This document shows, piece after piece, positions 35,218-38,233 of a stretch of 64,000 nt of DNA. Position 1 is the stretch's first letter, and the number at the start of each line of letters is the position of its first letter. Under the pieces are notes generated by a model. It ran no database searches. It was given only the letters and a program-made list of their open reading frames with translations, and had not been told where the DNA came from. This DNA comes from Bugula neritina (lineage: Eukaryota; Animalia; Bryozoa). Made by a program: the position numbers and the translations under genes. The stretch lies in NCBI GenBank assembly GCA_964035545.1, contig OZ037770.1, positions 11,738,463 through 11,802,462 on the forward strand, given 5' to 3'.

Positions 35218-38200
35218 TTATACCTGGGCCATGTTGTGCCATCTTTTAGCCATTTCATCTGCTATATTCTCCGTAATAGACTTGACCATTTCACCCGTCT
35301 CATCAATATTATTCAGCAAGGTCTTCACCATTGGAGCCACGGCTAGATTCACATTAAGAGTGTGCCGAGCTTTTGATACAGTTTTTCTTGGAGTGACCTT
35401 TGCTGCTATGCGATACTTGACCTCTTGACCTTTTGGATGGCACATGCACCGAAGATTCTCAGCAAAGCAGGTCACGCTGTTGTAGAAAAAAAGAACCACA
35501 TATTCATAAAAATTTCACTTAGATATTTTCTAACTAGAGTGAAAAGAGATATTCTAAAACAGCAAAAGATCATAAGGTGTTTTGTATTCAAAAAGTTATT
35601 ATACAATGTATGAAACTAAAAGTCTTTGTATTGAGTGGTATTTAAATGTTATTCTTATATATAATTTTCAATAAATTAATTTCAAAATGAAAAAATATAA
35701 ATTTGCTGACATAATATAATAAATTTTATGTTTGTTGATTATGTTTGTTGTTTACGTTTATTGTTTATGTTTATTGTTTATGTTTATTGTTAGTAAAAGC
35801 TTAGATCAAATAGATTAGATAAATCTCAAACTTTTTCAGAATAAAAATGAATGTCAGCTGAGAAAAGTCTTGAAATGTTTTAGAATGCTATAAATAAATT
35901 ACTTTCTATGTTAATTGAGTAAAATATCATATTGGTATGAATAAAAGGGAAAACTTATTTAAGTGCTAATTTCAAAAAATGCATCATAGATTAAACTTAA
36001 CTTGGTATAGGACTGCAATAATCAATTAAATCTATGTTCCCATGGGAAACCCATTTCGTCATTGACTCACTCAGTAGCAGTATTTTCTGCCTTATGCAGA
36101 GCATACCGTTACTGAGTAATTCATTTGCCTGCAAAAGTAAGTTCAACAAATGGAACTTCATGTCTCTCACCTGTTGTAGGACAGTGTCCATGGTCCACCA
36201 TCTCTTTGCACAAAGACATTACAGTAGTCTCTTTTCTTGCCATCTTTAAACGGTAGACAGCATTTGAAGGGCTTAGCTAAAGGCATCTCCGAGTCCAGTT
36301 CTATCACGTGACTAGCAAACAGGTTTGTAGTGTATGCCTGCAACATTTGAATAAAGATTTTATTAAGAGAACATATTTATCCATGTCATGAGAAACTAAT
36401 TATTTTCTTTACAAAACATGATTTTTCTTCATATCATATTAAAATCTTTTTTAGAATACTTTTATAGGAAAATAGCAAACAATGATTTTATCCCAATTTG
36501 AATAGCATTTATATAAATATTATTACTATAATATACTATTAGTGTAGAACTAATATTATTTCTTGATTCATATTATATAAAACAACTTTCAATCTCATAT
36601 TGTAAGTATGCTACATTCATTTTTCGCTTTCATGTTCATTTTTGAAAATATGTAGACACCTTAAAAATAATGTTTTTTTTCCACGGTTTACATTCAAACT
36701 GAATAACTGTGAATTTTTATGACTGCATCACTTGACTATTTTTATTTAATAAAACAAATTGCACTATAAAATAGATATTTTTTGCTTATTTAACAAAATT
36801 TAATGCTTTATGAAATGATGCAAAATTGTGAAGCCTACAAAAAGTCTTGAAACCCAGACTTGCCTTCACTCTCACTAAGCTGGGTCTACTGAACGTTCCC
36901 TTGTCTATGATAACCCATGTACCAGGGAGCACTTCCATTCGACCACCTTCTGGTCCAATTCTCCCGCTTGTCTCATTCAAACAATGGTACTCATCTTCAA
37001 CTGTTACTGTTTCTGTTGGCTATAAGATTATTAAATCAAATTTTTTCTAAGGCAAGATCTATAAATAGTAACATAATTTGCAATTTGCAGTTTTCTATAA
37101 ATGCAATTTTACATTTCTGGGTCTAGTGAATGTTTTAGTATGCAACCTAATTCGAGTTTTAAATTTTTTTGCAGCCCTTTAGTTATAGTTGCATTATGTA
37201 CTATTAAAATGAACTTAGTAAATAGTTATAGTATTTTCAATATGTAATATTATAATGCAGACAGTATATACAAGTCTTGAAAATCTCGGCCAAGCATTTT
37301 GTTGTACGTGTTGTCTAGCATATGTATATGAAGAAGCTTGGGTGCCTCATTTCTTTTGGATGAAAAAAATTAATTGCAAATTTTAGTAAAACAGTTTCTC
37401 ATACTGGAGGTATAGAAGCAACTCGTCTCGGTGACTTGTTGAGATAGCCTCTCATCTTCTCGTTACTCAATATCATGTCCCAAATGATAGTCTTTATAGC
37501 TACTCTAACGGTGTGTTCATTTCTATCATGTTGTTTACACACTGTCATTGATCTCTTCTCTCCTTCAGTTAGTCTGCTTGCAGAGATCAAATCAAAGTAT
37601 TCAACTGCCTATAAAAGAACAAATATTTGCATTTTTTCAACTCTGATTGGTAAAGGAAGATTTCACTGAATTGGCACTGACATCAATTTTAACTTTGCAA
37701 TTAAAATTGCTATGAACTTTCCTATTAAATTATCATTTAAATAATCCGCTTGAATGCATTTAGGAGCAATATCGAAGAAATTGAGATAGCCAAAGTTCGT
37801 CAACTCTTTTATTAAATTTTGGTTTGGGGTGCGGGTTGAACTTCTCACAAGAACACAACTTCTTATGCTACATTTTTAATCTAGAACACAGAATTTTCTC
37901 AATTTCCCCATTACTGCACCAAATATTTAATGCTAGTAAAAACTTGTAAAATGCATTCTAATTTTATAAATAATTATAATTAAAATCAAATAGACTTGCA
38001 GCTAATTTTTAACTAAAGCACATGAAAAATACCGTGTCTGCTCTGTCGTCAACATTAGCCTGATGCTTTAAAGCTTGTTGATCTTCAATAGGGGTGACTT
38101 GGTACTCTTCCAGTAAATCATAATATAGCTCAAGTTCTCTGTTCCATGGCCCCCCTCTGCGAACTTTTGCCAAATCTTTCTTAGACATGTCAGCTACACC

Positions 38201-38233
38201 TCTCAGGCTCTTCCACCAGTCTTGAAGCTTATT
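35218..38233 (-). CDS. Copy B cytoplasmic tail exons including ZU5-like domain
   Basis: Five exons continue in frame from the S6 exon. [56 protein letters not shown] resembles the ZU5 pattern. The true end may be the stop at 35218 or a further mini-exon 34902-34922 (THKPSD*). Confidence 0.8.

Follow-up and report, generated by a model that had tools for sequence, protein, structure and literature searches.

A polycystin-1-type gene of Bugula neritina with a candidate, very divergent ZU5-like domain in its cytoplasmic tail

Introduction

Members of the polycystin-1 family (PKD1, PKD1L1-3, PKDREJ and sea-urchin REJ) share a PLAT domain, a polycystin (TOP) domain and a PKD channel that ends in transmembrane segment S6, and the same layout is seen in gene B, which lies on the minus strand of a 64,000-nucleotide stretch of the genome of the bryozoan Bugula neritina (the window; contig OZ037770.1, C6:11738463-11802462). 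Work on this family centres on the ectodomains and channel cores, and how the tail connects to the cell is still open, human PKD1 included. The tails characterised to date are either short or contain a coiled coil together with a G-protein-activating segment, and we know of no globular beta-domain in any of them. ZU5 domains serve as docking sites in other proteins: that of ankyrin binds spectrin, that of ZO-1 captures a partner peptide by a beta-strand and that of UNC5 docks intramolecularly. Autoproteolytic ZU5/FIIND domains carry an HF/S or SF/S site, for which alanine is the classic cleavage-dead residue.

An earlier note on the window, made by a model from the DNA letters, proposed that gene B encodes a polycystin with a ZU5-like scaffold module in its tail, an interpretation that is partly supported by the analysis given here. 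Gene B probably encodes a PLAT/polycystin/PKD-channel protein with a multi-part tail of about 330 amino acids (aa) that includes a very divergent ZU5-like domain, by analogy a docking module. If true, the architecture would be new, a polycystin tail bearing a globular docking domain like those of ankyrin, ZO-1 and UNC5, and would provide a simple model for the anchoring or regulation of such channels, although its reach is limited to a family seen so far in B. neritina and a handful of related marine contigs. The claim that no ZU5 tail had been described agrees with a full-text literature search for polycystin and ZU5, which returned no such fusion; the PKD1 tail literature it returned concerned the human coiled-coil and cleavage tail.

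Results and Discussion

Gene B and Its Tail Exons

A Polycystin/TOP domain with a PKD channel region, and a PLAT domain in the first cytoplasmic loop, were both found in gene B. The PF20519 match, together with weaker exon matches to PLAT, PKD_channel and Ion_trans (Table 1), identifies it, as judged by sequence, as a PKD1-type polycystin. Precomputed domain assignments place PF01477 (PLAT) in the public B. neritina protein P0022, and PF08016 in both P0022 and a contiguous orthologue, P0021. The lectin ectodomain proposed in the earlier note found no Pfam match, and neither did REJ or GPS, among the 20 larger exon open reading frames (ORFs) scanned, a scan confined to larger exons and insensitive at the level of single exons.

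Five exons (e2 to e6) follow the S6 exon, all with compatible phases, and together encode 328 aa, in agreement with the in-frame tail of about 330 aa predicted beforehand; the peptides quoted in that prediction were found in place, letter for letter. The S6 exon is 89-98% identical in amino acids among paralogues, and is joined directly to e2 in a spliced orthologue (L026, described below). Exon e2 is in phase 0 at both ends, has conserved AG/GT sites and is 47-71% identical to its orthologues, but has no relative in Pfam or PDB sequence searches. The C-terminal end of e3 runs into a variable linker. The best conserved exon is e5, which closes in phase 2 and is 73-84% identical in most orthologues and 36% in the most distant. 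The intron 3′ of e4 is of the GC-AG type in gene B and in its paralogue copy C (AAG/GCAAGT, window 36862-36863), while copy A has a canonical GT at the same base. That the tail exons are real coding sequence is confirmed, far beyond chance.

Table 1. Features of gene B, in window coordinates
Feature	Position	Strand	Remarks
PLAT domain exon	49654..49830	-	PF01477 0.0053 on exon
Polycystin (TOP) domain exon	40766..40987	-	PF20519 7.5e-14
S5/pore exon	39063..39350	-	PKD_channel 0.011, Ion_trans 0.011; 54-55% identity to orthologue S5 exon
S6 exon (channel end, start of cytoplasmic tail)	38626..38816	-	Ion_trans 2e-4, PKD_channel 0.05, exon alone
Tail exon 2 (e2)	38033..38233	-	67 aa; conserved 14-residue block
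Tail exon 3 (e3)	37405..37608	-	68 aa; conserved 13-residue block
Tail exon 4 (e4)	36864..37019	-	52 aa; N-terminal strands of the predicted beta-domain (GPEGG turn, TWVIID strand)
Tail exon 5 (e5)	36171..36337	-	55 aa + 2 nt; predicted central strands; conserved KPFKCCLPF and GPW
Tail exon 6 (e6)	35221..35476	-	85 aa; last predicted beta-domain strands (starting VTCFAEN), then predicted amphipathic helical hairpin
Candidate ZU5-like beta-domain, span with introns	35389..36995	-	about 125 aa over three exon pieces
TAA stop overlapping conserved CAG/GT donor	35218..35220	-	after e6

The 3′ end of gene B is uncertain, since the stop codon overlaps a donor (CAG/GTATAA, 3′ of e6) that is in use in orthologues, where it joins e6 to either one or two short exons of low conservation. 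No downstream homologue of these final exons was recognised in the window when it was queried with the orthologue C-termini, and blastn found no conserved block between gene B and copy C downstream of e6. Gene B may therefore extend beyond 35218 into a further exon that is poorly conserved and was not recognised.

Within intron 2 (window 37738-37977), the contig depth in genomic run X1 rises to about 26,000, whereas nearby sequence has about 100, and there are many loose ends, which suggests a high-copy repeat.

Channel and Tail in One Protein

When the e5 profile was run exhaustively against 1.84 billion representative proteins, the only matches were four ORF fragments, all unspliced, and no protein of full length was among them. 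Orthologous loci were gathered from the contigs of these four fragments and from a metagenome scan; beyond the three copies in Bugula, the family was found only in about eight related lineages, sampled in marine metagenomes and metatranscriptomes. In two of these loci, L006 (14 kb) and the more distant L036 (40-70% identity), the S5 and S6 exons and e2 to e6 are collinear on one strand, and L027-L031 and L007-L009 are partial versions of the same exon layout.

Orthologue L026 is an intronless contig from JGI of 3411 bp. A single ORF (bases 3-2753) encodes the polycystin domain (PF20519, 1.1e-25) and the PKD channel (PF08016, 3.2e-28), followed by homologues of e2 to e6, and its exon joints are exactly the borders predicted in the window. 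In genomic contigs of the same organism from four runs (L032-L035, 98-100% identical to L026), introns separate e5, e6 and another two short exons, proving that L026 is spliced. P0021 (745 aa) is a second contiguous orthologue with the architecture of L026 and the same exon borders. Channel and tail are thus one protein in these relatives.

These sequences decide against the idea that e4-e6 lie outside the channel protein, as a separate gene or as conserved non-coding sequence. In its favour, the tail exons of B. neritina are known here from genomic DNA alone, the contigs of run X1 extending across the introns with no exon joints, and the public model of the gene (EB796_003483, a hypothetical protein of 1399 aa matching the exons of gene B at 80-100% identity each, all along the window; P0022) stops at e3. 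The end of that model (...IPPV) is, however, a read-through of the e3 donor (GTA TGA, window 37405-37404); phases fit across five introns, the ratio of nonsynonymous to synonymous substitution rates (dN/dS) is low and the exons are collinear in every genomic orthologue, while L026 and P0021 carry channel and tail in one ORF, the former with its splicing proven against same-species genomic contigs. A separate origin of e4-e6 was rejected on this transcript evidence from spliced orthologues, and we consider it extremely improbable.

EB796_003483 also skips the first part of e2 and, having no e4-e6, lacks the whole beta-domain. The domain is therefore invisible to routine annotation, being missed by Pfam and lying downstream of the point where the public gene model is truncated.

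Tandem Copies and Selection

Across the genome (216,009,554 bases), e4, e5 and e6 occur in exactly three places each, all within one tandem array of three genes on C6. Gene B is one of these, and the window also contains copy A, whose 3′ part extends beyond its low end. The earlier note had suggested looking there for the same tail, and it was found (L004), with the six exons in order; they are equally in order in copy C (L005), and both of these tails lie just outside the window. Amino acid identity to the gene B exons is 89-98% for copy A and 63-89% for copy C. Hidden Markov models (HMMs) of e4 and e5 run against the whole genome retrieved the three paralogues and nothing else.

Splice acceptors and donors are conserved among the copies, and the only blocks aligned by blastn between gene B and copy C are six, corresponding to the six exons. 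Per-exon dN/dS is 0.00-0.24 between B and A and 0.04-0.34 between B and C, and for the first 39 codons of e6 it is 0.00 and 0.04, respectively. The tail exons are thus under purifying selection.

In copy C, e4 is extended upstream by a Pro/Val/Thr/Glu-rich tandem repeat of about 200 aa (L005:3905-4657, minus strand), placed directly before DEYNCLN, and the AG acceptor found in copies A and B is absent. The insertion at this point marks a domain boundary. At the same position, orthologue L026 has an unrelated Pro-rich linker.

Two open frames on the minus strand of the window (24809-25777, 322 aa; 17171-17863, 230 aa) are Ser/Thr-rich and mucin-like, with T/P/S repeats; lying between or within polycystin copies, they may be exons of an ectodomain stalk. 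Microsatellites of the (TA)n/(TATG) type are present at 16012-16559, 21699-22140, 57351-57552 and 63076-63308. On both strands they produce spurious open frames reading YIYIYI, and their positions match between the two gene copies.

Predicted Fold of the Tail Domain

Window sequences were searched exon by exon, and contiguous tests used the natural orthologues L026 and P0021. The fold was accordingly examined on an orthologous segment (L026:2070-2624) that shares 52-82% identity with the window, exon by exon. AlphaFold2 was given the contiguous orthologue, aligned with the translated exons of every locus, each in a row of its own, and with no ZU5 sequence; the two alignments (A6 and A9) were anchored with sub-ranges of the natural L026 sequence, using MAFFT.

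A first run (150 aa, A6) gave a predicted local distance difference test (pLDDT) score of 42; nothing meaningful could be read from the Foldseek and VIA searches with it. The second run (185 aa, deeper alignment) reached a mean pLDDT of 51.9, with residues 10-50 at 70-78 and residues 77-150 below 50, and showed ten strands followed by a helical hairpin (orthologue residues 134-182, pLDDT about 53-64). When this model was compared by Foldseek with 350,542 PDB chains, the top 16 matches, and 18 of the top 20, were ZU5 domains (ankyrin-R/B/G and ZO-1), with E-values of 0.02-0.6 and probabilities up to 0.99. A shape search of the ESM Atlas returned PF00791 in five of 10 family sets, at template modelling (TM) scores of 0.41-0.49. 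The structural check proposed in the earlier note therefore gave a mixed answer when run on the orthologue, ZU5 heading the Foldseek list but from a model of low mean confidence.

Another sandwich of the autoproteolysis type, such as subdomain B of GAIN, might be the closer relative, but its scores fall below all of the ZU5 matches and there is no GPS motif. GAIN domains are extracellular and juxtamembrane, before the first transmembrane segment, whereas the gene B domain is predicted to be cytoplasmic and follows S6. This relationship appears very unlikely.

On weak, convergent evidence from models and sequence comparison, the beta-domain most resembles the ZU5 domains of ankyrin, ZO-1 and UNC5, a likeness that is favoured but not proven. 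The differences from each are considerable. Compared with ZU5N and ZU5C of ankyrin-R/B/G (PDB 4d8o, 6m3q, 3f59, 3ud1/2 and 3kbt/u), the gene B domain is without the IPPG and SP signatures and without a Pfam ZU5 match. Ankyrin is a soluble adaptor, while the gene B domain would end a membrane protein of the ion-channel type, with no second ZU5, UPA or death domain. Identity to the ZU5 of ZO-1 (PDB 2kxr, 2kxs) is 13-16%; ZO-1 is a soluble MAGUK scaffold, and its incomplete sandwich, completed by a ligand, is not evidenced for gene B. The UNC5 netrin receptors (PDB 3g5b), 12% identical to the gene B domain, are single-pass proteins with a ZU5-UPA-death domain supramodule. No Pfam match to UPA or death domain was found after the beta-domain in the 395-aa orthologue tail, and in the model the sandwich is followed by nothing more than a hairpin of helices about 50 residues long.

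Sequence Comparison with ZU5 Domains

Weighing against a ZU5 assignment, PF00791, the Pfam profile named as a check in the earlier note, had no match at E<=10, whether in a single exon, in the contiguous orthologue domain of 150 aa or in the orthologue tail of 395 aa. A six-frame search of the genome with PF00791 found 31 genuine ZU5 places, none of them at the gene B locus, and conversely no ZU5 exon of the genome was picked up by the e4 and e5 HMMs. Fragments of the family in a 5.8-billion collection carry no PF00791 label. PDB sequence searches, made exon by exon, gave no match, and a feature search of the atlas with e4 alone stayed below noise.

Profile-profile comparison by hhalign gave a graded picture for the N-terminal half of the domain. 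Against the N-half ZU5 exons of the genome, the score was 13.0 at exon level, which is not significant against controls of 8-11, and 17.1 with the contiguous profile, where the maximum of 40 shuffles was 16.9. With 120 database ZU5 fragments and P0021 added, it rose to 23.1 (HH probability 13%), compared with a maximum of 19.8 and a median of 12.1 in 60 shuffles. The register was the same in three runs, aligning the GG turn to GG, TWVIID to the V.IPPG strand and AS.VI to the SP..L strand. The C-terminal half was never significant against ZU5. A language-model search using only the sequence of the 150-aa domain returned ZU5 as the sole named family (four of 30 clusters, at 0.91).

Of the ZU5 pattern that the earlier note had read from the exons, the GG and W are conserved and the N-half aligns in the expected register, but IPxGA and SP are replaced. 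The GG of the ZU5-like turn reads GA in two orthologues.

The domain could instead be a lineage-specific beta-sandwich unrelated to ZU5, the low-confidence AlphaFold2 model having drifted towards a known sandwich with which it shares a few local sequence features. This would not readily account for the way in which Foldseek (3Di+AA), the VIA-wide search, the Atlas shape search and the sequence-only language-model search single out ZU5 from very large libraries, with matches from three distant families that cover about 90 of the approximately 125 residues. The profile-profile score also exceeds those of 60 shuffles, in a register that had been predicted beforehand. An unrelated sandwich is the most serious alternative, though we judge it unlikely.

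Proposed Organisation of the Tail

Under the preferred reading, a channel with a very divergent ZU5-like domain, the tail would consist of four parts. A conserved segment of about 135 aa with no recognised fold (e2-e3) would be followed by a variable Pro-rich linker, then by a probably ZU5-like beta-sandwich of about 125 aa, encoded by e4, e5 and the first part of e6, and lastly by a predicted amphipathic helical hairpin. If it works as in ankyrin, ZO-1 and UNC5, the ZU5-like domain would be a non-catalytic protein-docking module beneath the channel. It would tie the polycystin complex to a partner of the cortex or a scaffold; alternatively, it might fold back on the e2-e3 segment to regulate the tail. 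Like the tail of PKD1, that of gene B is predicted to be cytoplasmic, and the helices in which it appears to end are a possible counterpart of the PKD1 coiled coil; the hairpin could stand in for it as the element that pairs with a partner.

The Start of Exon 6 and Autoproteolysis

The absence of an HF/S autoproteolysis motif, as noted earlier, was borne out: gene B and both paralogues read VTCFAEN at the start of e6 (window 35455-35475), with no serine nucleophile. Orthologues read VTCFSE[SN] or ITCFSDN here (L026:2379-2399), so that the serine is present, while the histidine is replaced by cysteine everywhere. The F-S dipeptide of the non-Bugula orthologues is reminiscent of the HF/S or SF/S site of autoproteolytic ZU5/FIIND domains, though without the histidine of the HF/S form. 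Its position may be roughly that of the F/S cleavage site of PIDD1, UNC5CL and the NLRP1/CARD8 FIIND, before a further hydrophobic strand, in a region where the model is of low confidence.

A bolder reading, which we regard as improbable, is that a bryozoan polycystin-1-type receptor-channel acquired a genuine ZU5, now extremely divergent, that wires it directly to a spectrin- or ankyrin-type cortical partner. Species with F-S could then release a C-terminal helical fragment by autoproteolysis, a route that the Bugula copies (F-A) would have lost. Such release, if true, would be a tail signalling route parallel to the cleavage of the polycystin-1 C-terminal tail.

Elsewhere in the genome, an open frame at C4:11043155-11043573 (L013, minus strand) has a WHFS motif immediately before a ZU5 match, and its sequence resembles a PIDD-type tandem ZU5 whose HF/S site is intact. 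Between 12.41 and 13.08 Mb on C4, N-half exons of ZU5 (SFLVDARGG...), more than 20 in number and nearly identical, form a tandem cluster of 0.7 Mb, many with an in-frame TAA near the exon end; this cluster is an expanded ZU5 gene family in B. neritina.
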